Of a stretch of 64,000 bases of DNA, positions 17,202 through 62,745 are shown piece by piece. The DNA is taken from NCBI RefSeq assembly GCF_039654945.1, contig NW_027361870.1, forward strand, positions 26,226,001-26,290,000. The letters are read 5' to 3'. Origin of the DNA: Dendrobates tinctorius (taxonomy: Eukaryota). The notes beneath the pieces were generated by a model. That model was not told where the DNA came from and ran no database searches. It saw only the letters and a list, made by a program, of their open reading frames with translations. The position numbers were made by a program, and so were the translations under genes. Every line of letters starts with the position of its first letter. Position 1 is the first letter of the stretch.

Positions 17202-18422
17202 CACTCACTGGCCACTTTATTAGGTACACCATGCTAGTAAGGGGTTGGACCCCCTTTTGCCTTCAGAACTGCCTCAATTCTTCGTGGCAGAGATTCAACA
17301 AGGTGCTGGAAGCATTCCTCAGAGATTTTGGACCATATTGACATGATGGCATCACACAGTTGGCGCAGATTTGTCGGCTGCACATCCCTGATGCGAATCT
17401 CCCGTTCTACCTCATCCCAAAGATGCTCTATTGGATTGAGATCTGGTGACTGAGGAGGCCATTTGAGTACAGTGAACTCATTGTCATGTTCAAGAAACCT
17501 ATCTGAGATGATTCGAGCTTTATGACATGGCGCATTATCCTGCTGAAAGTAGCCATCAGATGTTGGGTACATTGTGGTCATAAAGGGATGGACATGGTCA
17601 GCAACAATACTCAGGTAGGCTGTGGCGTTGCAACGATGCTCAATTGGTACCAAGGGGCCCAAAGAGTGCCAAGAAAAAATTCCCCACACCATGACACCAC
17701 CACCACCAGCCTGAACCGTTGATACAAGGCAGGATGGATCCATGCTTTCATGTTGTTTACGCCAAATTCTGACCCTACCATCCGAATGTCGCAGCAGAAA
17801 TCGAGACTCATCAGACCAGGCAACGTTTTTCCAATCTTCTACTGTCCAATTTCGATGAGCTTGTGCAAATTGTAGCCTCAGTTTCCTGTTCTTAGCTGAG
17901 AGGAGTGGTACCCAGTGTGGTCTTCTGCTGCTGTAGCCCATCTGCCTCAAAGTTCGACGCACTGTGCGTTCAGAGATGCTCTTCTGCCTACCTTGGTTGT
18001 AACGGGTGGCAATTTGAGTCACTGTTGCCTTTCTATCAGCTCGAACCAGTCTGCCCATTCTCCTCTGACCTCTGGCATCAACAAGGCATTTCCGGCCACA
18101 GAACTGCCGCTCACTGGTTTTTTTTTCTTTTTCGGACCATTCTCTGTAAACCCTAGAGATGGTTGTGCGTGAAAATCCCAGTAGATCAGCAGTTTCTGAA
18201 ATTCTCAGACCAGCCCTTCTGGCACCAACAATCATGCCACGTTCAAAGGCACTCAAATCACCTTTCTTCCCCATACTGATGCTCGGTTTGAACTGCAGGA
18301 GATTGTCTTGACCATGTCTACATGCCTAAATGCACTGAGTTGCCGCCATGTGATTGGCTGATTAGAAATTAAGTCTTAACACACAGTTGGACAGGTGTAC
18401 CTAATAAAGTGGCCAGTGAGTG
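17202..18422 (-). mobile_element. Full-length Tc1/mariner element D, DD36E (Incomer-type)
   Basis: TA|CACTCACTGGCCACTTTATTAGGTACACC...GGTGTACCTAATAAAGTGGCCAGTGAGTG|TA. 1221 bp with a 29-bp perfect TIR. Confidence 0.95.
17234..18274 (-). CDS. Intact Tc1-family transposase, DD36E, 346 aa
   Basis: Uninterrupted ORF with an HTH N-terminus, [16 protein letters not shown] and [11 protein letters not shown]. There are 36 residues between the second D and the E. Confidence 0.95.
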
Positions 18423-27589: not shown

Positions 27590-30500
27590 TGTTATGATTG
27601 AGTCACCGTAGGAGGCAAAAACAGAAATGCTAGCTAAGTCCAGAAAACCAGAGAAGTTGGCAACTATCAGATTGCAGACCCCTGAACCTATCAACACAAC
27701 TAGCAGTAGCCGTGGGGGGTTCCTACGATGACCTAGACCCCTCGATCACAGCCGGAGAGATACATAGGCCTAAAGAAGGAAAGGGGAAATCTAACTGCCC
27801 CAGAGCAGACCCTAAAGCAATAGGCAGCCCCCCACATATAATGACGGTGAAGCAAGATGAAAACACTTACACAGACAGAAAGACAGGCTGAGCAAAGACG
27901 GGGCCCAAAAACTACCTAGATAGGAACGGATAGGAAGGCTGCTGTCTGCAATCTGCCAAAACCCTATCAGAGACAAAAGCCAACAAGCTGATATAAAAAT
28001 GGCCCTGAAGCAACTAAGCTTCAAAAACTAAATCAGCACTCAGGTACTTTCAGAAGACAGAGCTCACGGAACACTGCACACTCCAGCAGGGAGTGGCAGA
28101 ATCCAAAAAGCAAGAAAAACAAAAACAAATATTAAATGCAAAAAGGCAAAACAGAAAACTTAGCTTTAGGAGAGCAGGAATCAGACTGGTGTCCAAGAGT
28201 CCACAGAGAAATCACCCGCAGGGCAGAAAGGGCGTAGGCTGCCTTAAATACAGTCAGAGACTCCACTCAGCCAATCGTCTTCATTAGTCCCAGGTGCCTG
28301 ATAATCAGGCTCACTACCTTCCTTCACTAGAATAGGGAGTTCACCAGGCCTCAGTGACGGAGGGGAAAATGAACTCACAACAGTACCCCCCCCTTGAGGA
28401 GGGGTCACCGAACCCTCAACAACGCTACCAGGGCGATCAGGGTGAGCCCGATGAAAGGCACGCACCAATCTTTTGGGCATGAATATCAGAGGCAGAGACC
28501 CAGGAATTATCCTCCTGACCATAACCCTTCCACTTAACCAAATACTGGAGTCTCCGTCTAGCCAGACGGGAATCCAGAATTTTCTCTACCTCATATTCCA
28601 AGTTACCTTCAACCAATACAGGGTCCGGAGGTGCCACCTCAGGCACAACTGGCTCAACAAACCTCTTCAACAAGGACTTATGGAACACATTATGGATCTT
28701 AAATGTGACAGGAAGAGCCAAACGAAAAGAGACCGGATTAATAATCTCCAAAATCTTGTAAGGTCCAATAAATCTAGGCTTAAACTTAGGAGAAGCCACC
28801 TTCATAGCAATATTCTTTGATGATAGCCACACCATATCACCAATCTTAAACTGGGGACCAATGGTCCTATGTCGATTGGAAAACCACTGGGCCTTTTCCT
28901 GGGAGAGAGATAACTTATCCACCACTTGGTCCCAGATCTGGTGCATTCTCTCCACCACAGTGTCAACACCTGGGCAGGCAGAGGGCTCCACCTGCCCTGA
29001 CGAAAATCGAGGATGAAACCCAAAGTTACAAAAAAAAGGTGACATCAAAGTGGCAGAACTAGCTCTATTATTTAAAGCAAATTTGGCCAAGGGCAAAAAT
29101 GAAACCCAATCATCCTGATCAGCGGAAATAAAACATCTCAAATACGACTCCAAGGTCTGGTTTGTTCTCTCTGTCTGCCCATTGGTCTGAGGGTGAAAAG
29201 CAGAGGAGAAGGACAACTGAATTCCCAACTTGGAACAGAACGTCCTCCAAAATTTAGACACAAATTGAACTACTCTGTCAGATACAATGTTCTCAGGAAT
29301 CCCGTGCAAGCGAACCACCTGTTGCAAAAACAGGGGCACCAACTCAGAGGAAGATGGCAACTTAGGGAGTGGTACAAGATGAACCATCTTAGAGAACCTA
29401 TCACAAATCACCCAAATAACAGTCATTCTTTGAGAGACCGGCATATCAGAGATTAAATCTATTGAAATATGGGTCCATGGCCTCCTGGGGACCGGCAAAG
29501 GCATCAACAACCCACTAGAGCGAGAACAAGATTTAGACCGGGAGCAAGTCCCACAGGACTGCACAAAATTCCTGACATCATGAGACAAGGTGGGCCACCA
29601 AAAAGAGCGACTCACCAGATCTCTAGTACCAAAAATACCCGGATGACCAGCCAATGCAGAGCAATGAACTTCAGACATCACTCTCTTCTTCCACTGGTCA
29701 GGAACATACAACTTTCCACTGGGGCAATGCTCAGGTTTGTCCTCCTGGAACTCTTGCAGAGCAAGTCTCAAATCGGGCGAGATGGCAGAAAGAACTACCC
29801 CTTCGCCTAAGATGGTAGCAGGCTTGGTCACCACAGGAGAATCAGCAAAGAAACTCCTAGAGAGGGCGTCTGCCTTGACATTCTTAGTTCCAGGAAGGAA
29901 AGAGACCACAAAATCAAAACGTGTAAAAAACAAGGCCCACCTAGCCTGTCTAGGGTTCAAGCGTTTAGCCGACTCTAGGTAAATCAAATTTTTGTGGTCA
30001 GTGAGGACCACAACTTGATGTTTGGCTCCCTCCAACCAATGTCTCCACTCCTCAAATGCCCATTTCATGGCCAACAGTTCCCGATTCCCCACATCATAGT
30101 TACGATCAGATGAAGAGAACTTTCGGGAAAAGAAAGCACAGGTATTCATTTTAGATGTTACCGGATCCTTTTGGGACAACACTGCTCCTGCACCAATCTC
30201 AGAAGCATCCACCTCTACCTGAAACGGGAGTGAGACATCAGGTTGCCGCAGAACCGGGGCGGAGGTAAATCTACGCTTCAGCTCCTGAAAGGAAGCAACC
30301 GCCTCCGGAGACCAATTCAACACATCCGCACCCTTCCTGGTCAGGTCAGTCAATGGTTTGGCAATAATAGAAAATTTTGCTATAAATTTCCGATAAAAAT
30401 TAGCAAAACCCAAAAACTTCTGGAGGGCCTTCAAAGAAGTGGGCTGAACCCAATCATAAATGGCCTGTACCTTGGCCGGGTCCATTTCAATAGTTGACGG

Positions 30501-33500
30501 ATACAAAATAAATCCCAAAAAAGAAATCCTCTGTACTCCAAAAAGGCATTTTGATCCTTTGACATACAGAGAATTCTCTCTCAAGATCCGGAACACAGTC
30601 CGAATATGTTCCACATGAGCATCCCAATCCTTGGAGAAGATCAAAATATCGTCCAGATAGATAATCAAAAATTTATCGACAAAGTCTCGGAAAATATCGT
30701 TCATGAAGCACTGGAAGACAGAAGGGGCATTAGTGAGCCCAAAAGGCATCACCAGGTACTCAAAATGTCCCTCCGGAGTATTAAACGCCGTCTTCCATTC
30801 ATCCCCCTGCTTAATGCAGATAAGGTTATACGCTCCCCTGAGGTCAAGCTTGGTAAACCAGCAAGCGCCTCTGACTCTAGAGAATAGATCCGAAATCAGG
30901 GGTAACGGATACTGATATTTAATAGTAATTTTATTGAGGGCACGATAATCAATACACGGCCTTAAAGAACCATCCTTCTTGGCCACAAAAAAAAAACCGG
31001 CACCTAAGGGTGAAGAGGATGGTCTAATATGACCCTTCTCCAACGCCTCCTTAATATAGGACCGCATAGCCTCGTGCTCGGGTACAGATAAATTGAAGAG
31101 CCGACCCTTAGGAAATTTACACCCTGGGCTTAGTTCAATTGCACAGTCATAACTCCTATGAGGAGGCAAGGAGGCAGACTCATTCTCACTAAATACATCA
31201 TAGAAGTCCGCCAAATAGTCAGGAACCTCATGCGACTGAGGAGAGGTGGAAAAAACCGGAGCCTCACTAAAGGTACACCGGCAACCCCAACTCACCACAG
31301 ACACAGACTTCCAATCCAAAACTGGATTATGAATCTGCAACCAGGGAAATCCCAGAACAACGGCATCATGCAGACCATGCAACACCAAAAATCTGCAATT
31401 TTCTTGGTGGTCTGGGGCGACCCGCATGACCAACTGGGTCCAAAACTGAGGTTTATTTTTAGCCAGAGGGGTAGCATCAGTCCCCCTCAAAGGGATAGGC
31501 GTCTGCAGAGGTGTCAACGGAAATCCACAACGTTTAGCAAAATCCAAGTCCATTAGGTTTAGCGCTGCTCCCGAATCCACAAAAGCCTTGGCGGAAAATG
31601 TGGACAGGGAACAGATCAGAGTAATCACCAAAAGAAACTTAGGCTGAACCCCACGAACAGAAAACGTGTGTGCAAAGCGTTTCTCACATTTAGGACAAAC
31701 AGAAATAATATGTGAGGCATCTCCACAGAAAAAACACAGCTTATTGCGCCTTCTGAATTCCTGACGTTGCGCCTTAGACAAAACTCTATCACATTGCATA
31801 GGTTCAGACGTCTGTTCAACCGGTGGCAACACCTCTTGTGTAATCCTGCGTTCACGTAAACGCCAATCAACCTGAATGGCTAAAGACATAGAATCGTCCA
31901 GACCAGAGGGAACAGGAAATCCCACCATAGTATCTTTTACGGCTTCTGACAAACCCTTCCGAAAGAGAGCAGCCAAGGCACTATCATTCCAGGTAGTAAG
32001 GACCGCCCACTTTCGGAACTTTTGACAGTACAACTCTGCAGATTCTCGACCCTGGTTCAATGCTAACAGGGTCTTTTCAGCCTGATCAATAGCATTAGGT
32101 TCGTCGTACAGCAACCCCAAGGCTTGAAAAAATGCGTTCACATTAGTCAGAATAGGGTCATCTGGTTTCAAAGAAAACGCCCAATCCTGGGGATCGCCGC
32201 GCAGCAAAGAGATGACAATTTTAACCTGCTGCGCGGGGCTCCCTGACGAGTTAGGCTTCAAAGCAAAAAATAATTTACAATTATTTTTGAAACTCAAAAA
32301 TTTAGATCGATCCCCAAAAATTACATCAGGTGTGGGGATCTTTGGTTCAACAGCATGTGAACGAGCAAGATAGGCGGAAATTCCTCGCACTTCAGCAGCG
32401 AGCTGCTCCACACGATCAGACACTTGCTTTATCTCCATTGAGAGAAAAAAAAAAAAAAAATTCCCCCTACGGCCTCAGAGATATAGAGGAAAGAATATAC
32501 ACACACCTTTTTTTTTTTAAACACAATTCTTTCCTGCTATTGAGTACCCCAGGATCTGCGGTTTGGCGGGTGATTCTGTTATGATTGAGTCATAAAACAG
32601 AAATGCTAGCTAAGTCCAGAAAACCAGAGAAGTTGGCAACTATCAGATTGCAGACCCCTGAACCTATCAACACAACTAGCAGTAGCCGTGGAGAATTAGG
32701 CTTTCTGAATGTCTCTTTCCTGTGCCAGCAGACCCAGGTCACTGAGGTCTGCTGCAGCACTTCCTTCAATCCATCCCACTCAGGGGATCTTCTCTCACAG
32801 AGTGACCTGTTATGATTGAGTCACCGTAGGAGGCAAAAACAGAAATGCTAGCTAAGTCCAGAAAACCAGAGAAGTTGGCAACTATCAGATTGCAGACCCC
32901 TGAACCTATCAACACAACTAGCAGTAGCCGTGGGGGGTTCCTACGATGACCTAGACCCCTCGATCACAGCCGGAGAGATACATAGGCCTAAAGAAGGAAA
33001 GGGGAAATCTAACTGCCCCAGAGCAGACCCTAAAGCAATAGGCAGCCCCCCACATATAATGACGGTGAAGCAAGATGAAAACACTTACACAGACAGAAAG
33101 ACAGGCTGAGCAAAGACGGGGCCCAAAAACTACCTAGATAGGAACGGATAGGAAGGCTGCTGTCTGCAATCTGCCAAAACCCTATCAGAGACAAAAGCCA
33201 ACAAGCTGATATAAAAATGGCCCTGAAGCAACTAAGCTTCAAAAACTAAATCAGCACTCAGGTACTTTCAGAAGACAGAGCTCACGGAACACTGCACACT
33301 CCAGCAGGGAGTGGCAGAATCCAAAAAGCAAGAAAAACAAAAACAAATATTAAATGTAAAAAGGCAAAACAGAAAACTTAGCTTTAGGAGAGCAGGAATC
33401 AGACTGGTGTCCAAGAGTCCACAGAGAAATCACCCGCAGGGCAGAAAGGACGTAGGCTGCCTTAAATCCAGTCAGAGACTCCACTCAGCCAATCGTCTTC

Positions 33501-41833: not shown

Positions 41834-42230
41834 GATGTGAGGTTAAAAAGGGCGCTGTCTCCCGTTGTGGTAATTCATTTTAAGAATAGATTTAGGCGTG
41901 TTTTAGGAGTGTTTTCTGTTCTAACGCCAAGTGTAAACAGAGACATTTTTGTAATCCTTCAAATCTCTACTGAACTTATATCTTCATGTTCATTTAGAGT
42001 TTTTTGTAATTTATCCTTTAAGTTGGAAAACTCGCTATCCGTAGCGAATTTATTGACCAATTCCTGCACATGTTTTTTTTGCTCTCACAAATTACAATAT
42101 TTTATGTTTTAATACCTTTTCTATTGCTTTGTATGCTGGATTTTTTTTCTCTCTTGTTGTTTCCCTGCCCAGAAGTCGGTCTGGAGTCCATGCACTGCAT
42201 CTTCATTGAGGTACATTTTTTCCACACTAA

Positions 42231-42696
42231 GGCTGGTTTCACATTAGCGCTTTTTAAGCGCACGCACGGCCGGGGGTAGCTCCGCCCCCGAGCCGGCTCT
42301 CTGCCCGGCGTGCCCGCCCCTTGCTTGTAGCGCCGCCTCCTAGCGGACAGCGGCGCCTGCGATCGGCGCACCCTATCTTTAGCATAGGGTGCGCAGATCG
42401 TGCGCAGGCCGTGCGCTAGTTGCGCTTTGACCTGCGCTGCGCACTTTTGACGGTGCGCCGTGCGCGCCAAAATCCGTCAAAAGTGCGCAGCGCAGGTCAA
42501 AGCGCAACTAGCGCACGGCCTGCGCACGATCTGCGCACCCTATGCTAAAGATAGGGTGCGCCGATCGCAGGCGCCGCTGTCCGCTAGGAGGCGGCGCTAC
42601 AAGCAAGGGGCGGGCACGCCGGGCAGAGAGCCGGCTCGGGGGCGGAGCTACCCCCGGCCGTGCGTGCGCTTAAAAAGCGCTAATGTGAAACCACCC
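42231..42696. mobile_element. PIF/Harbinger-type MITE, family D, almost perfect palindrome
   Basis: TAA|GGCTGGTTTCACATTAGCGC...GCGCTAATGTGAAACCACCC|TTA. Arms ~220 bp, loop ~20 nt. Confidence 0.9.
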
Positions 42697-43290
42697 TTAG
42701 TGAGCCGATTTCCCTTCCCCCCTCCCCCACTCCTTTTTGGTATCCCTAAAGAAACAGGTTGTGTAAATTTGTTGAAAAAAATTGAAATTGGTACTAAACT
42801 TTTAGACTCTCTAACATCCTAACAAAATAAAATCACATTTGAAAAATGATGTAAATGTAAAGTATATGTGAGGGAAATATTATTTATTATTTTTTTTGTC
42901 CGGCATGACTAGCACAGAAGAACTTAAGGATACAGTATATATGGTAGATTGAAATTTTGAAAATTTAGGGTTTTTTTTTTCACAATTTTCACCAAAATTG
43001 TGATATTTTCGCAAATAAACGCAAGATATATGTATACAAAAAAAATTATGCCACTATTATGAAATACAATATGTCACAAAAAAACTGGGATCCTTTGAAG
43101 CGTTCCAAAATTATTACCTTATAAAGTTACACTGGTCAGATTTCTAAAATTTGACCTGGTCATTAAGGTCAAACTTTGCTTGTTCGCTAAAGGGTTAAAA
43201 CATTTCTTTTAAAGATATAATACTCAACCTATCTTATCCTCATCGCATTTGTGCCAGCGTCCAACTGTCCAGGTCCCATGCCAGTCTTAA

Positions 43291-43684
43291 GGGCATGTCA
43301 CACTAAGAGATATCGCTAGCAATATCGCTATGACTAGTGACGTTATAGCGATATTGCTAGCGATATCTCTGTGTCTGATACTTACCAGCGACCGGCTCCC
43401 CCGCTGGTTATCGCTGATCGCGCGAGAACGTTCAGGACTGTTTCTCGTCGTCAGCTTCCTGCGGCGCTTCCTGCTGTGAGGACGAGCGACGCGTGGAGCC
43501 GGGCGGGAGGACGCAGGATCGCCTAGTGTGACAGGTAAGTAGCGACCCCCGTCCCCAGCGATGTCGTTAGTGAGATCTGCCTATGTGGCAGCTCACTAGC
43601 GACCACTTAGCGATGTACCAGCGATCCTGACCGCGTCATATCGCTGGTCGGGATCGCTGGTACATCGCTAAGTGTGACAGTACC
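43291..43684. mobile_element. PIF/Harbinger-type MITE, family A
   Basis: TAA|GGGCATGTCACACTAAG...CGCTAAGTGTGACAGTACC; near-identical to 5846-6239. Confidence 0.8.
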
Positions 43685-44562
43685 TTTAGTGTTTGGCCAA
43701 TCAAAATGTGTCAGTTTTGACATTGATTGAGAGTGACTGACAGTGGTCACATGTCAATTTTGACGAAGCAAGGAGTAAAGCTTGTCTTTCTACTTCCTGT
43801 TCTCTTCATGACCAAAATGTAACCTCTGCAGCTAATAATTTACAGTGATCAATAAGGAAGTTATATTTTTTTATAGAGTATTTTTTTCATACATTAATAG
43901 TTTATGTGAATATCAGAAATGTTGTAATTTATCTTGTTAGAAAAATAAACTTCTATTTCCTTCAGGACAGATTATTCATTCTCAAAATATTCAGTTCACA
44001 GGTAAAATGTGTCTTATGTGTCCTATACCACTACTGAGATAGAAGATGACAGTTGGTGCTCATAAGATTATATGGAGATAACTGTTGTTTCAAAAGAACT
44101 TTCAGTAGAATGTCTGTGTTCCGCTAGCTCCTCCCTCTTCTCCATAAACTTTTAAAATCACCAACTGCAATCTCTTAGGCCTCTTTCACACATCAGGTTT
44201 TCGCCGTCATGCGTGATCCGGCGCTTTTGACAGAAACCGGATCCGGCGAAATGCAATGCCGGATCCGGTTTCCCCCTCATTGACTTGCATTTGCGCCGGA
44301 TCGCGCCGGATGGCCATGCGTTTCATCCAGTTTTCGCCGGATCCGGCAATGTGTCGCGATCCGGCGTCTGGAAAAAACGGCTACTGTAACGTTTTTTGTC
44401 TCCGGCGAAAAAGCCGGACCCGCCGGATCCGGCGCGTCCGGCTTTTTCACACAATGAAAGCCTATGAGCGCCGCAATGCGCCTGATCCGGCGAAAGCCGG
44501 ATCCGGTGGCCGGATCCGTTTTTTTTGGTCTGAGCATGCTCAGTAGCTCTGCCCACAAGACA

Positions 44563-44571
44563 TATATAAAA
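44563..44571 (+). promoter_or_regulatory. Candidate TATA box of the MADF gene
   Basis: TATATAAAA ~35-40 bp upstream of ATG 44604, just inside the subterminal repeats. Confidence 0.5.
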
Positions 44572-44603
44572 GCAAGACAGTGGGACCCACAGCCACACCC
44601 AAC

Positions 44604-47195
44604 ATGCCACCCAAGAAAGCAACCAAGCGCAGCAGGAGAAGGCAGGAGACCACTGCAGCACCATCAGCACCACCACCACCCCAAATGGAGCAGCAAATGG
44701 AACATGCTGAGGAGGGGAGTCCAGCAGCAGATGAGAGACGGTAATTATCAAATCCCCCATTCCTCGAAACTAGGGCCATGGAATATCAAGATATTCATTG
44801 GCCCTTTGTTTCTCTTTATTCAACAGCCGCCCAAGAGATGCAGCAGCAGCAGCAGCAGAAATGGCATCACTGGCAGCAGCAACAGCAGCAGCAATACCCA
44901 CAGCCATGGAGTCTGGTCATCAACAGGACAGCACATCTTCTTCTGGGAGCCCTCCCTCGCATCGTCAGCGTTTGACGGTAAGTTTTTATTTCCAAAATCC
45001 ATCATCTCTGTAATATATGTCTATTCATTGCCTTTTATTTCAAAACATGAATCACAAGATGAAGAGGAGCTCCCAGAAGAAGAAGGAAGGGGTGGACAGA
45101 CACCTGGAGTGGGCTCACAATTGGTAAGTTTTTTGCATCAAACGCAGAAACACAACATCACACTACACACAACACATAGAAAACAATGTTCTGCAGACCA
45201 CACATAGCAAAAAAATGCCTACATCCAAAGACATAACATTTTTTGTTTTATTCTCTAGTCTTCCCAATCTGGTGCTCGGCCAAGAGGTCCTCGCAGTGCC
45301 TCCCAGGGTCGTCGGCGACAGCAACGCGGCGGTCACCAGCGTGTAAGTATAAATATTTTTGCTTTGTTTTTTTGCACTTTTTATTTCATTTCTTTTGTGG
45401 AGGCTAATTATGTTATTTTTGTCTTTTTCTTTAACAACCTTCACAGCGTGCTCCCGACTCTGACGGTGAGGTTGGAGGACTCGATGTGGACCACCTCATC
45501 GATCTCGTCAGAGAAAGGGAGCCGCTCTGGAATATGGCTGACCGCCGCCACGCTGACCTTATCGTTACCCGACGACTCTGGGAGGAAATCTGTTCGCTCC
45601 TTGTGGGCCGCTGGGAGGCCCTCGATGTTCGGGCCCAGATTAAAGAGCGTAAGTATATACAGTACCGGTTGCTTGATGTAAACCAGTGTTTCCCGAACTC
45701 CAGTCCTCGTGGTCCCCACGGATCATGTGTTCAGGATTTCTATTTACTATGGAAATCCTGAAAACATGACCCCTGGGGACCATGAGGACTGGAGTTTGTG
45801 AAACACTGATGTTGTATACTAACCACTCCTTTCTCGTTTCAGGGAACAGAATTGTGAATCGGTGGCGGTCTGTGAGGGATCGTTTCAAGAAGGAGTTCAA
45901 TAAAGAGATGCGGGCCCCGGGTGGATCTGGAGGACGCAGGAGCAAGTACAAGTACGCACAAGCCCTGTCGTTCCTCCGGGAAACAATGGTCACTAGAAGG
46001 TAAATATTACACACCACATGTGAAAAAAAATGTTAGATGTAACTTTTTTTTTTCAGCCAGGGCCATACCATGTCAGTATTTTAATTGTTTTTTTTTCTCT
46101 TTATTCCACAGCACGGTGAGCAGCACTCGGGAGCCTGCACGATTGGACCCTTCTGAGGCGATCCCTGAGGAGACCGGCACCGAGGGACACTTCGACCGCC
46201 CCGGTACATCTGCACCTTCCCAGCCTTCCCACACATTCGACCCATCTGTCCCATCCACCAGCACAGGAGCATCGTGGCCGCCTACATTACATGAAGCTGC
46301 TGGTGAGGAGATCGCTTTCCCTTTACCCCACCCTTCTGCCCCTGCCACCTCTAGTACACCTGCGGGTACTGGGCGACAGCGGCAGAGGGGTCAGGAAAAG
46401 AGTTATGCGCAAGAGTTCTTGCATCTGAATGCATCTTTCCAGAACTGTCTAAAAGTCTTGTCAGAGCAAATCTCCGCAGGCTTTCAGCAGATCAACTCCA
46501 GCATTCTGGAGGTGAAGACACTTCTGCAAACCATGCATTCAGAAGCAAGATCTTCGCCAAACCACACCTTTTTCTGGTCTGTTGTGGAGCGCATGGCAAC
46601 ACTATCTCCTACCCAGCAGATGCATGTAATGCATTCGTGCCACGGTGCTCTACAGCAGGTTACCTCCCAACCTCCACCTCCCACCACTGTAGTTCCTCCA
46701 CCTGCACCCCCTCCAGCCACTTTCCATCCTCCCCCTCCTATTACATCTGCACCCCCTCCAGCCACTTTCCATCCTCCCCCTCCTATTACATCTGCACCCC
46801 CTCCAGCCACTTCCCATCCTCCCCCTCCTATTACATACCAGCAACCTCACCAGTACCAGCAACCTCCCCAGTACCAGACATCTCCCCACTTCCAGCAACC
46901 TGCCCCGTACCAAACTCCTTCCCCGTACCAAACTCCTTCCCCGTACCAAACTCCTTCCCCATACAACTTTCCATCAACATCATCTGCTCCTACAGTCCCT
47001 GCCCAACCCTCCACTCCACCGCCCACCACCTCTTCTGCCTCCCACATGTCCACCCATTCTGTAGCTTTTTCCACACCTTCACCTCTAACTGTTCCTTCCC
47101 CACCACGATCCCAGTCCTCTCTCCACACACCCAGTGTCAAAGTGTCCCGCAGCCCCTCCAGCAGTATTTCCACCCCACACTACACAGATTTGTAA
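44604..47195 (+). CDS. Harbinger Myb/SANT-like (MADF) accessory protein, 7 exons, ~629 aa (604 aa if exon 3 is skipped)
   Basis: Exons 44604-44740, 44827-44977, 45049-45123, 45259-45342, 45447-45648, 45843-45999, 46112-47195. Phases are consistent with no stops. All introns are GT-AG except the exon-3 acceptor (AT). MADF: LIDLVREREPLWNMADRRHAD...LWEEI...RWRSVRDRF...YKYAQALSFL. Basic N-terminus, Pro-rich tail, AATAAA at ~47208. Confidence 0.85.
45684..45808. mobile_element. Tiny palindromic hAT-like MITE in intron 5 of the MADF gene
   Basis: CAGTGTTTCCCGAACTCCAGTCCTC...GAGGACTGGAGTTTGTGAAACACTG. Confidence 0.7.
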
Positions 47196-47698
47196 TGTGT
47201 GTTTTTTAATAAATATGCCCATTGGGTTTAAAACCTTTATTAAAAAAGTTTTTTGCACTTTAAAAACATTTTACAAAAAAAAAAAAAAATTTTAAATAAA
47301 AGTTAAATTATCGTTTCACAATGGTTGTCTGTCATTTCTTTCTGCGGCGAACTATGTTTAAAAAAAAGGTTAAATACAGGGTATTTCAAAGGTAAAAAGG
47401 TATTCAAAACCAGGTATATAACTGTGGGTAAATTTTAGCTTTTTGCCACAGTTGTGTTCCTGGTTGTGTTTGAAGCAAAGTATTTCACCTAAAAAGTTGT
47501 GTTTATTGTTGGTGATTTCCTAACAATGTACACAACTTTTGTTAAAAGGTGAAATACTTTGCATAAAACACAACCAGGTACACACCTGTGGCCTAAAGGT
47601 AAAAATAGTAAGACCATGACAAGATAGCCAACTTTGGTTGGCAAAGGTATATACTGTTGGTCCAGAAGGTACACAAGTTTGGTTAGGGCACAAATCTT

Positions 47699-47824
47699 TC
47701 ACACTCTGTCATCCTGCCAGTGTACTCTGCCTTGAGGTGACATAAAGTATAGTGCAAAATTGTCCCTCATTACTGAAACCGTCACAGAACTTCTAGTGGT
47801 AATATTTCCAATGACAACATCCAT
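47699..47824 (-). pseudogene. Residual Harbinger transposase mini-ORF (41 aa)
   Basis: MDVVIGNITTRSSVTVSVMRDNFALYFMSPQGRVHWQDDRV*. The second half matches the Harbinger transposase C-terminal motif (compare HDVFTNYFVTPQGANPLQ at ~23650-23705). Confidence 0.75.
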
Positions 47825-48302
47825 CTTCGCCAGTAACTTGCTCTTCTCTCCAACCTGCACTTTCTTCTCTACAACCTGTCAAAGAAGGGCTGTAGGAACA
47901 TGCTATATATAGTTTTCCAGTAGCTAATCCCATTCGGAAGGCCACAAGGGTCAATTTTAAAAACCGGATCCGGCGTAATCCGTCGAAAAACGGATAGAAA
48001 AACGGATGAACTGGATGAGACGGATCCGGTTTTGTCTGTCAAGAACAAGACGGATCCGGCAGAAAACCGGATCCGGCACATCAGGTTTTACAAAACATTT
48101 GCCGGATCCGGCATTCCGGCACGACGTCGGATCGCGCCTGACGCCGAAAACCTGATGTGTGAAAGTAGCCTTATCTAGGTAATGGAAAAATCTGTCTTCA
48201 CTGAACACAGATTTTACCCAGTGATTGTGAATGAAAGATAAATCCCATTAGAAAAAAAAATTCTCTGATAAGATATATTATAAAGTTTCTTATTTTCATA
48301 TA

Positions 48303-51507: not shown

Positions 51508-54397
51508 TGTTAGGGACGGCGGAACGCACTAAATATAAAATAATAGAAAGTGCGTTCGCCGCCCGGGGTCCACCGTGCAGAGGTGTTAAACTGCTGCTAT
51601 ATAATGGCAGATGCACAATATGGCTGTATATCGCACATGGGATGAACGTCACCCGGTGTGCACTGGGCGTACTCTGTTATATTCACAGAGTCGCCTTAAG
51701 GCATAAAAATAAATGCTGAGCCTGTTGACCTCACAGGTCTCAGCGGTGTGCACGCACAGTATATGGTCACAGGACTCGGGCCCAAGACACAGGGTTGGTG
51801 TCCGTCTAGACCTACCGTGCGTGCGGCGTCGCTACTGCAGACGCCCACAAGTACTGCTGACCGCAGCATGGCAACTGACTCAGCCACTATACGACAATGC
51901 CCAGGAGGGGCGCACTGTCGGACGCTAGCTCTGTGGAGATGAGCACTGTGGCTTGTAGCATGCCACTGACTGGCGCTGACTCTAAGGCTAAGTCCCTGTC
52001 CACACACGTAATATCAGAGGGAGGGGATCTTAATGAGTCATTCGCAGGTTCATGCATCCATCATCATTCACACAGTAGCAATTAGAGACTACACTAGCGC
52101 ATGGCCGAGCGGCCATGCAGACCTTTTATAGACGTGCGGGATCTTCCAGATCTCTGGGATGGACCAATCAGACCAGGAGAAGGACCTGAGCACGTGACTC
52201 CCGATCTCTAATGGGAGATCGTCTCGTCAGCATGCCCAGTAGCGTGACAAGAGGACTTAGCCACTGGGGTGGCTTGCTGCAGGGCACCCTGCGCTGCTAT
52301 TGCTGACCCAGAGGTGGCAGCAACAACCAGTCCTATAGAGCTGGTCTGAGCAGAGTGCCTGCGACGCCGAGATTGCTGTGCAGGCTCCTGAGCCGTCGGA
52401 GAAGAATGGGAGACCGCAGGATGCAAGGCTCTGGATTTCCGCTGTGCAGCTGCAGGAAACCGACACCTAACATTACCCCCCTCCTAGGGCCCCCTCCCCT
52501 CTGAGCCTCGGCACGCTCAAAAGCCGCGATCAGGAGCGGGGCGTGGATGTTCTCCACTGGCTCCCAGGTCCGGGCCTCCAGACCATGACCCTTCCAGTCA
52601 ACCAAATAAAAATTTTTGCCACGCACAATCCTGCGTCCCACAATGGCGTTGACCTCAAACTTATCCAAGGACAAGTCTGATGTCCCGGCAGATGACTCGG
52701 AAAACCGAGCCATGTGAACAGGCTTGAGAAGGGACACATGGAAGACGTCAGAGATGGCCAAGTGTGGTGGAAGAGCCAGACGGTAGACCACTGAGCTCAT
52801 GCGCTCGAGGACCTTGAAGGGACCAATGTATCGCAGAGCGAACTTGGAGAACTCGGCCCGCAGCTTGATATTACGCGCAGAGAGCCACACCAAGTCACCA
52901 GGGGCAAAAGTTGGAGCGGGACGCCAATGTGTGTCGGCTGACACTCTCATTCTCTCTTTAGAGGCTCGAATAGCATCCTGGGTGCGATTCCAAATGTCGT
53001 GAGCCTCCACTGCCCAGTCTGCCACCCTGGAATCAGTGGAAGACACTGGCATCGGAACAGGGACACGCGGATGCTGGCCGTAATTGAGAAGGAACGGCGT
53101 CTGACCAGTGGAATCAGCCACTGCGTTATTCAGGGCAAATTCAGCCCACGGTAGTAAGGATGCCCAGTCATCCTGCCTGGCAGAGACAAAATGTCGCAGG
53201 TATGTGACCAGTTTGATTGGCTCTCTCAATCAACCCGTTCGTCTCAGGATGATATGAGGAGGACAAATTGAGCTCGATACTGAGTAGACTGCAGAGCTCC
53301 CTCCAAAATCGAGACGCAAACTGGGGACCTCGGTCACTGACTATTTTGTCTGGCATACCGTGCAAACGAAATACGTGCTTTATGAACAGTGTGGCGAGAC
53401 CACGAGCAGATGGCAGTCGCGCAAGTGGCACCAGATGCACCATTTTAGAGAAATGATCGGTGACCACCCAGATGACCGTGCTGCCACCAGATTTGGGCAG
53501 GCCGACCACAAAGTCCATGCCAACCATCTCCCAGGGTCTGTCTGCCACCGGCAAGGGATACAGTAACCCAGCCGGCCTCTGCCTAGAGGACCTGTTCCGA
53601 GCACAAGAGACGCATGCTTGAATGTACTCTTTAGTGTCCCGAGCCATGTGCTGCCACTAATAAGACCTTGTCAGGAGTTCTGTGGTCTGCTTAATGCCAA
53701 AGTGACCATCACTGTATATGGTCACAGGACTCGGGCCCAAGACACAGGGTCGGTGTCCGTCTAGACCTACCGTGCGTGCGGCGTCGCTACCGTGGACGCC
53801 CACAAGTGCTGCTGACCGCAGCGCGGCAACTGATTCAGCCGATATACGACAATGCCCAGGAGGGGCGCACTGTCGGGCGCTAGCTCTGTGGAGATGAGCA
53901 CTGTGGTTTGTAGCATGCCACGGACTGTCGCTGAATTTAAGGCTAAGTCCCTGTCCACACACGTAATATCAGAGGGAGGGGATCTTAATGAGTCATTCAC
54001 AGGTTCATGCATCCCTCATCATTCACACAGTAGCAATTAGAGACTACACTAGAGCATGACAGAGTGGCCATGCGGACCTTTTATAGACGTGCGGGACCTT
54101 CCAGAAGGACCTGAGCATGTGACTCCGGATCTCCAATGGGAGATCGTCTCATGAGCATGCCCAGTAGCGTGACGAGAGGACTTAGCCACTGGAGTGGCTT
54201 GCTGCAGGGCAGCCTGCGCTGCTATTGCTGACCCAGAGGTGGCAGCAACAACCAGTCCTGCAGAGCTGGTCTGAGCAGAGCACCTGCGACGCCGAGATTG
54301 CTGTGCAGGCTCCTGAGTGGTCGGAGAAGAATGGGAGACCGCAGGATGCAAGGCTCTGGATTCCCGCTGTGCAGCTGCAGGAACCCGACGCCTAACA
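51508..54397 (-). mobile_element. Internally deleted Gypsy/chromovirus
   Basis: 5-bp TSD CTGTC. Full LTR 51508-52472, PPT at 52473-52500, truncated LTR 53714-54397. Confidence 0.9.
52473..53712 (-). pseudogene. Integrase + chromodomain remnant (frameshifted)
   Basis: GHFG...CVSC, MDFVVGLP, VSDRGPQF, HPETNGLIER, FEVNAIV...YLVDWKGHG...TWEP. Confidence 0.88.
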
Positions 54398-58701: not shown

Positions 58702-60783
<2,082 letters not shown>

Positions 60784-60785
<2 letters not shown>

Positions 60786-62745
60786 ATAAAAATCTTGAGG
60801 AGTGGCTCCAGCGGAGAACCTTTGATCTATCTCCACTCCGAACGAAGGTCCTACCAGACGGTGGGGAGATCAGGCTTACTGGAGCCACGGTAAGAATTTT
60901 GGCAGGATCGATGAGATGAGTGGGACCCTCCTCCTTGTCGACAGACAGGAATGACCGTGAAAGAGCATTCGCCTTGATGTTCTTCTCCCCAGGTCGGAAG
61001 TGGAGTTCGAAGTCAAATCTTTCAAAAAAGAGTGACCATCTGACCTGCCGTGGGTTGAGCCTTTGGGCGGACCGAAGGTAGGCCAAATTCTTGTGATCCG
61101 TAAAAATGATGAACGGATGGAGAGCACCCTCGAGAAGATGATGCCATTCTTCGAAAGCCATTTTTATGGCCAAGAGCTCTCTATCTCCCACAGCATAATT
61201 GCTTTCAGGGGCCGAAAAAGCTTTGGAAAAGAATCCGCAGGTGAGAGTGCGACCCGAGGAAGACTTTTGCAGCAGAACTGCGCCTGCTCCCACCGCAGAC
61301 GCGTCGACTTCGAGTATGAATGGCCTACTGGCGTCCGGGCGATGAAGTACAGGAGACTTGGCGAATTCCTGCTTCAAGACCTCAAAGGCAGTCTCTGCAT
61401 CCGGAGGCCAATGGTTGGGATCTGCTCCTTTGCGGACAAGAGTGGAGATGGGTTTAGTCAAGGAAGAAAAATGAGGGATAAATTGCCTGTAATAATTGGC
61501 AAAACCCAAAAAGCGTTGAATGGCCTTAACTCCGAGAGGGCGAGGCCAATTGAGAACTGCCGAGACTTTTTCCGGATCCATCTCTAATCCCGATTTCGAG
61601 ATGATGTAGCCAAGAAAAGGCAATGAAGTCTGCTCGAAGAGGCACTTCTCCAACTTGGCAAACAGGTGGTTCTCTCTGAGACGTTGGAGGACTTGGCAAA
61701 CGTCTCGACGATGTGAAATCAAATCGGGGGAAAAGACCAAGATGTTGTCTAGGTAGACCACGACACAGGAGTAGAGGAGGTCTCGAAAGACATCATTAAC
61801 GAGTTCTTGAAATACTGCAGATGCGTTGCAGAGCCCAAAGGACATCACCAAATACTCATAGTGTCCATCTCGCGTGTTAAACGCGGTCTTCCATTCGTCC
61901 CCGGAGCGTATGCGAACCAAATTGTAGGCCCCTCGTAAATCAAGTTTAGAAAACACACGAGCCCCCTTCAGGCGATCAAAAAGCTCAGAGATGAGTGGCA
62001 GTGGATATTTATTCTTCACCGTGATCTGATTTAAGCCACGATAATCGATGCACGGACGCAGGGACCCATCTTTCTTCTTTACGAAAAAGAAGCCTGCTCC
62101 TGCATGGGACGAGGACTTTCGAATGAAGCCTCTGGCTAAATTGTCTTGGATGTATTCAGACATCGCTTGTGACTCTGCTGAGGAGAGAGGATAAATTCTA
62201 CCCCGAGGCGGGGTTGAGCCAGGAACGAGCTCAATGGGGCAATCGTAGGGACGGTGCGGAGGAAGAGTCTCTGCTTCCTTTTTGTCAAAAACATCCAAAA
62301 AATCATGGTACACCGACGGCAATCCATGGGGTACAATGGGAGGACGGTGATTACCTACGGAGCGCACCGACAGCAGACACCGAGTCCGACACGACTCCCC
62401 CCAGTGCAGGACGTTACCACTATGCCAGTCTAAAATGGGCTCATGGAGCCGCAACCAGGGAAGACCCAGCAGGATGGGATGAGAAATACCTGCTAACACG
62501 TAAAACGTAATTTTCTCCTTGTGCAGAACCCCTACCTGTAACTCCACCTCATGGGTAACTAGGGTGACTGTCTCCAACAGGGGTGGACCATCTACGGAGG
62601 CGAAAACCTGAGGTTTTTGCAAGGGCCTCACGGGGACAGAAAGTTTATTCACCTCCTCTAACCGAATAAAATTTCCGGCGGCACCCGAATCCACATAGGC
62701 CACTAGAGAAGACCGCTTACCCCCAACATGAAAGAGGACAGACAA
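60784..62745 (-). pseudogene. Gypsy (sushi-like) pol: PR, RT, RH; truncated at the start of integrase
   Basis: YVDSGA, YLDN (YLDD changed to YLDN), VDASAVG; ends WSHSSRF at the junction with Tc1 DNA. Confidence 0.9.

Follow-up and report, generated by a model that had tools for sequence, protein, structure and literature searches.

Does a Harbinger transposon that has lost its transposase and kept the gene for a Myb-like partner protein still supply that protein, or is it simply one more decaying copy? The question is raised by a Harbinger-type element of 3993 bp, located at 44178-48170 of a 64,000-nucleotide stretch of the genome of the poison frog Dendrobates tinctorius (contig NW_027361870.1, positions 26,226,001 to 26,290,000 of the forward strand; the whole of this 64-kb stretch is called the window). 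The evidence makes it probable that this is a young, non-autonomous PIF/Harbinger copy without a transposase, which has lost the intron-2 acceptor of its MADF gene and belongs to a multi-locus family that decays neutrally.

The ends of the element, with their terminal inverted repeats (TIRs) and target-site duplication (TSD), are as follows.

44175-44177: left TSD, TTA, matching the TTA at 48171-48173
44178-44206, plus strand: left TIR of 29 nt; the inverted repeat reaches 44223
44207-44530: left subterminal region with six CGGATCCG palindromic motifs, CpG observed/expected 1.46
47951-48141: right subterminal region with five CGGATCCG motifs, CpG observed/expected 1.65
48142-48170, minus strand: right TIR of 29 nt
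48171-48173: right TSD, TTA, directly outside the right end

The two 29-nt TIRs differ by 3 mismatches, the extended inverted repeat covers 47 nt at 87%, and no further match to the 29-nt TIRs is present elsewhere in the window. The complete TIRs and the TTA duplication described in an earlier reading made from the letters of the window (the sequence-only reading) are thus borne out. Between the TIRs and the interior lie arrays of a short palindrome. Its ten-base form, CCGGATCCGG, occurs 8 times in the window, compared with 0.02 occurrences expected, and all eight lie inside the element, no farther than about 350 bp from its ends; the 8-base core, CGGATCCG, is found 11 times in the two subterminal regions and nowhere else in the window. 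These motifs are presumably binding sites for the MADF protein. The high CpG content of both regions (the ratio for the whole window is 0.56) suggests that the insertion is young. Because TIRs, TSD and subterminal repeats are jointly the hallmarks of PIF/Harbinger, the element can be assigned to this superfamily. It has the TIRs, the 3-bp TSD of the TWA type, and the second gene, encoding a Myb/SANT-like (MADF) protein, and it lacks the DDE transposase (DDE_Tnp_4 / Plant_tran), which makes it a non-autonomous derivative rather than an autonomous member. A MADF open reading frame (ORF) without a DDE gene inside one TIR-bounded unit is the arrangement of Harbinger-1M_cIno, the MADF-only PIF/Harbinger derivatives of Caenorhabditis inopinata, for which catalysis has been proposed to occur in trans (Sato et al. 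2026, Genome Biol Evol, PMC13668399). The earlier label of a "Myb-only Harbinger" is therefore correct.

The loss of the transposase gene, likewise claimed earlier, is upheld by the region in which it should lie. The distance from the MADF stop codon to the right subterminal region is 765 bp, and no remnant of a DDE gene is present in this spacer; the interval 47196-48081 contains neither an ORF longer than 61 aa nor a Pfam match. Two features are found in the expected place of the transposase.

47699-47860, minus strand: short ORF, 41 aa from the ATG at 47824, with its stop at 47699-701
47903-47912, minus strand: TATA-like box, presumed to be the former transposase promoter; the short ORF lies about 80 nt downstream

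The short ORF had been described as an in-frame fusion, 41 aa long, of the head and tail of a transposase. The ORF itself exists; its origin from a transposase finds no support, since it has no Pfam match, a word search gave no candidate, the Atlas gave no usable match, and a HMMER search against 1.84 billion protein representatives did not point to a transposase, although these searches have little power for a tail of 22 residues and leave that origin unverified rather than refuted. Four HMMER matches were dismissed as spurious matches to repeat-rich proteins, two of the four being bacterial beta-propeller repeats with a short motif similar by chance. On the minus strand, an acceptor-like pyrimidine tract and an AG stand just ahead of the last 24 codons of the ORF. 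Thus, what precedes the tail may be intron and the tail itself the final exon, in which case the "in-frame fusion" would be accidental.

The gene that has been retained, on the plus strand, consists of seven exons, whose junctions were set by P0046, a full-length paralog, and by P0041, a spliced isoform. The continuity of exons 2 and 3 is also backed by more distant relatives from Ranitomeya and Anomaloglossus.

44563-44569, plus strand: TATA box, TATATAA, 41 nt before the first ATG
44604-44740, plus strand: exon 1, ATG at 44604, basic N-terminus; aligns with P0046
44827-44977, plus strand: exon 2, in phase 0 at its 3' end and followed by a perfect GTAAGT donor
45047-45048, plus strand: intron-2 acceptor, lost: AT is present, and the family junction LT/ESQ (P0041, P0046) needs AG
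45049-45123, plus strand: exon 3, borders taken from the family
45259-45342, plus strand: exon 4, basic, resembling a nuclear localization signal
45436-45437, plus strand: intron-4 acceptor, AA in place of AG; splicing at the in-frame AG 9 nt downstream (45445-46) would drop 3 residues (PSQ)
45438-45648, plus strand: exon 5, first half of MADF (Pfam PF10545, profile positions 1-50)
45843-45999, plus strand: exon 6, second half of MADF (Pfam PF10545, profile positions 45-84)
46112-47195, plus strand: exon 7, with a linker, a conserved BESS-like region, proline-rich repeats and the TAA at 47193-95
47208-47213, plus strand: polyadenylation signal, AATAAA, 13 nt past the stop codon

With the exon borders of the family, the frame is open for 629-632 codons to the TAA at 47193-95, and a second in-frame ATG in exon 2 (44908) corresponds to the N-terminus of the relatives. 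The spliced model was searched one exon at a time; in the full-length paralog P0046, PF10545 is matched at E 5.8e-11. The BESS motif (PF02944) stays below threshold, with E values of 0.1 and 0.048 at corresponding sites of P0046 and P0035, and the Pfam scan does not report it for exon 7 of the window. The TATA box and polyadenylation signal credited to this gene by the sequence-only reading are in place.

The same reading took the seven-exon gene to be intact. The exon bodies are indeed open, and every donor is GT; of the six acceptors, four are AG, and those of introns 2 and 4 are AT and AA, respectively. The loss at intron 2 is read from the family junction, which is fixed by one D. tinctorius locus, whose read-through isoforms (P0005/P0042) have Q at the junction codon and whose spliced isoform (P0041) joins exactly there. 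Since the read-through codon and the spliced junction coincide, the family sequence at this acceptor is CAG, and the window has CAT instead. The next AG (45057-58), used with the strong donor, removes 10 bases and brings a TGA of exon 6 (45855-57) into frame ahead of the second MADF half; it was therefore rejected as an in-frame start of exon 3. Retention of intron 2 leads to a stop at 45011. As judged from these splice signals, the copy most likely yields a frameshifted product lacking MADF rather than a working helper protein. The locus carries a caution: open exons do not by themselves make an intact gene.

The window copy is one of many. A word search with the exon-7 ORF returned 39 proteins, all of them from four poison-frog species, D. 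tinctorius, Ranitomeya imitator, R. variabilis and Anomaloglossus baeobatrachus. By cluster look-up, the 18 models from D. tinctorius reduce to 16 loci on 15 scaffolds, and 14 of the 16 form a close family, whose exon 7 shares 94-98% identity with that of the window; this identity by itself places the genome in D. tinctorius or a very near relative. The close paralogs sit in introns of different hosts genes on many scaffolds; three of the four paralog loci that were inspected lie inside different host genes, and none of the four has an annotated DDE gene within 6-10 kb. Most of the paralog models are truncated or begin inside introns. With the exon-5 ORF, the word search found two NCBI models and no run-assembly contig; among metagenome contigs, a scan for the TIR core and a scan with the MADF profile were both empty. 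The residues at the border of exons 5 and 6 divide the family into two subgroups, NRIVNRW (P0004, P0044, P0047, P0048 and P0049) and DRIVKRW (P0041 and P0046). The window copy falls in the former, in which no model among the five annotated members covers exons 1-4, a gap that may reflect a splice defect shared by the whole subgroup. It is also conceivable that the NRIVNRW subgroup spreads although correct splicing of its own MADF gene is lost. A separate oddity among the relatives is the gene model P0010 (A. baeobatrachus), which joins an N-terminus typical of frog zinc-finger genes to a Harbinger MADF protein; the annotation may be chimeric, or else host and transposon sequences are fused.

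The pattern of amino-acid changes in this family distinguishes the lineage from its single copies. Between genera, MADF is the most conserved part of the protein (61-80% identity), compared with 7-50% for the tail. Changes private to one copy are spread evenly, amounting to 2.0% for MADF, 1.9% for the linker and 2.0% for the C-terminal conserved region; the proline-rich tail has 2.3%. Because MADF is conserved between genera and private changes are uniform, the lineage appears to be constrained and the single copies to drift, which points to neutral decay of individual copies after insertion. The idea that the MADF gene of this element is under selection is not sustained, as private changes strike MADF as often as the disordered tail. 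The window copy has six private changes, about 1% private amino-acid change, and being so young it would need no selection to keep its exons open.

Taken together, these findings suggest the following course. The element has kept its two ends, together with the CGGATCCG arrays next to them and the gene for the MADF (Myb-like) partner, and it lacks a transposase. Since two proteins are required in Harbinger3_DR and in Ping/Pong, the copy could presumably move only if the DDE transposase of another element acted on its ends. Copies of the family would insert and then decay neutrally, one by one, and the window copy would be a young one whose exon bodies are still open.

Several points weigh against this account. 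Exon 3 could start at a cryptic AG, at 45067 or at 45070, and either start retains an open frame of 622-626 codons; a weak donor at 44970 joined to the AG at 45057-58 likewise keeps a frame of that length. In addition, the absence of DDE neighbors at the paralog loci could be due to repeat masking by the annotation pipeline, for which no positive control was found, and the comparison of the family rests on protein models and annotated gene neighborhoods.

One alternative, proposed by the sequence-only reading, is that the element is a working semi-autonomous helper. Cryptic splicing in frame would produce a MADF protein that binds the CGGATCCG arrays and recruits the transposase of another element. 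Because three in-frame GT-AG alternatives remain, a working MADF protein is possible though unlikely. The exon bodies, open for more than 620 codons, the TATA box and polyadenylation signal, and the intact, CpG-rich ends are all compatible with a helper, and a precedent has been proposed in Harbinger-1M_cIno (PMC13668399). These features are set against the destruction of the acceptor that homology defines, the shift of frame at the first AG downstream, and the strong GTAAGT donor, which should outcompete the weak one. Nor are private changes depleted in MADF, and chance is enough to explain open exons when private divergence is about 1%. With its canonical intron-2 acceptor destroyed, the window copy lends no support to the helper proposal, which we regard as improbable.

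A private deletion is an equally unlikely explanation. Here, a full Harbinger of two or three genes would have inserted and then lost its transposase at the window locus, leaving a junction present in a single copy. Internal deletion is the usual fate of DNA transposons; against this stand the four inspected paralog loci, all of which are without annotated DDE neighbors, and a hairpin within intron 5 that is itself common to several loci. This hairpin is one of two in the element.

45684-45808: near-perfect hairpin or palindromic miniature inverted-repeat transposable element (MITE), 125 nt, in intron 5 of the MADF gene
47433-47604: hairpin, 172 nt, in the spacer that separates the two convergent gene ends

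The intron-5 hairpin (-97.6 kcal/mol, z -17.5) has CAGTG termini and also occurs at four or more further family loci, as seen in read-through gene models; being present at other loci, it must predate the spread of the family. The spacer hairpin (-89.2 kcal/mol, z -15.1) holds a minus-strand AATAAA within its loop and may represent a MITE or a 3' region with secondary structure. MicroRNA-like Rfam matches on both hairpins were below threshold and were dismissed as generic hairpin matches.

Last, that the MADF gene is a host gene in the making, or a regulator of related MITEs, has a general precedent in the repeated domestication of Harbinger Myb-like genes in vertebrates and insects (PMC9392472, PMC9710019), but this earlier suggestion is unsupported and very improbable here, given intact TIRs, TSD and subterminal arrays, a multi-copy gene with neutral-looking private changes and a broken splice site, and a locus that is not among the annotated models found.

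Thus, the preferred reading remains that of a young, transposase-less copy of a neutrally decaying family. Its surroundings in the window abound in other mobile elements: two Tc1-type transposase ORFs and Ty3/gypsy-type polyprotein ORFs, one of which is an open frame of 1333 aa (17234-18274, 59039-59668, 28437-32438, 52333-53229 and 60784-62745 for the two types together). Over the 2 kb that adjoin the element on its left (42178-44177), the CpG observed/expected ratio is 1.05 (108 CpGs), versus 0.56 for the whole window; a CpG island or a further young repeat may lie there. The window includes 807 N bases.

Several known systems resemble the frog element in part. Tourist-like MITEs and non-coding Harbingers (e.g. 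mPing) are likewise derivatives that arose by internal deletion and are mobilized in trans through shared ends; they have lost both genes, whereas the frog element keeps one. Harbinger3_DR of zebrafish (Sinzelle et al. 2008, as cited in PMC13668399) is a vertebrate Harbinger with a 3-bp TSD; its Myb-like partner reportedly attaches to subterminal repeats and thereby delivers the transposase to the termini. Harbinger3_DR differs in that it carries both genes; the partner in the frog is of the Pfam MADF type with a candidate BESS-like motif, and its binding to CGGATCCG is a presumption. Domesticated Harbinger Myb-like genes such as NAIF1 and the MSANTD family (PMC9392472) share the Myb/SANT-type protein, the Harbinger origin and the lack of a linked transposase. 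These genes are single-copy, have no TIRs and are under purifying selection, and the frog element shows none of these features.

The closest counterpart is Harbinger-1M_cIno, which has TIRs and a TTA TSD, keeps the MADF gene and lacks the DDE transposase. It is also a multi-copy form with catalysis presumed in trans, to which the 14 close paralog loci, identified at the protein level, may correspond in the frog. The two differ in host and size, a nematode element of about 1.6 kb as opposed to 4 kb in a vertebrate, and the frog gene, known from sequence alone, has seven exons, a long proline-rich C-terminus and a dead splice acceptor. No report of a MADF-only Harbinger in vertebrates was found in the literature searched, and the frog element extends this recently described kind. 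As it stands, the window locus is an ordinary, slightly broken copy and one more data point. It is conceivable, and rather doubtful, that the frog family is a true vertebrate counterpart of that in C. inopinata, that is, a MADF-only lineage that was amplified as such, with binding and catalysis residing on separate elements and exchanged in trans. If the MADF-only form has truly been amplified in this 6-Gb frog genome, the splitting of functions would be a recurrent outcome of the two-protein design rather than an oddity of nematodes, with consequences for how such Harbinger families regulate or exhaust themselves.

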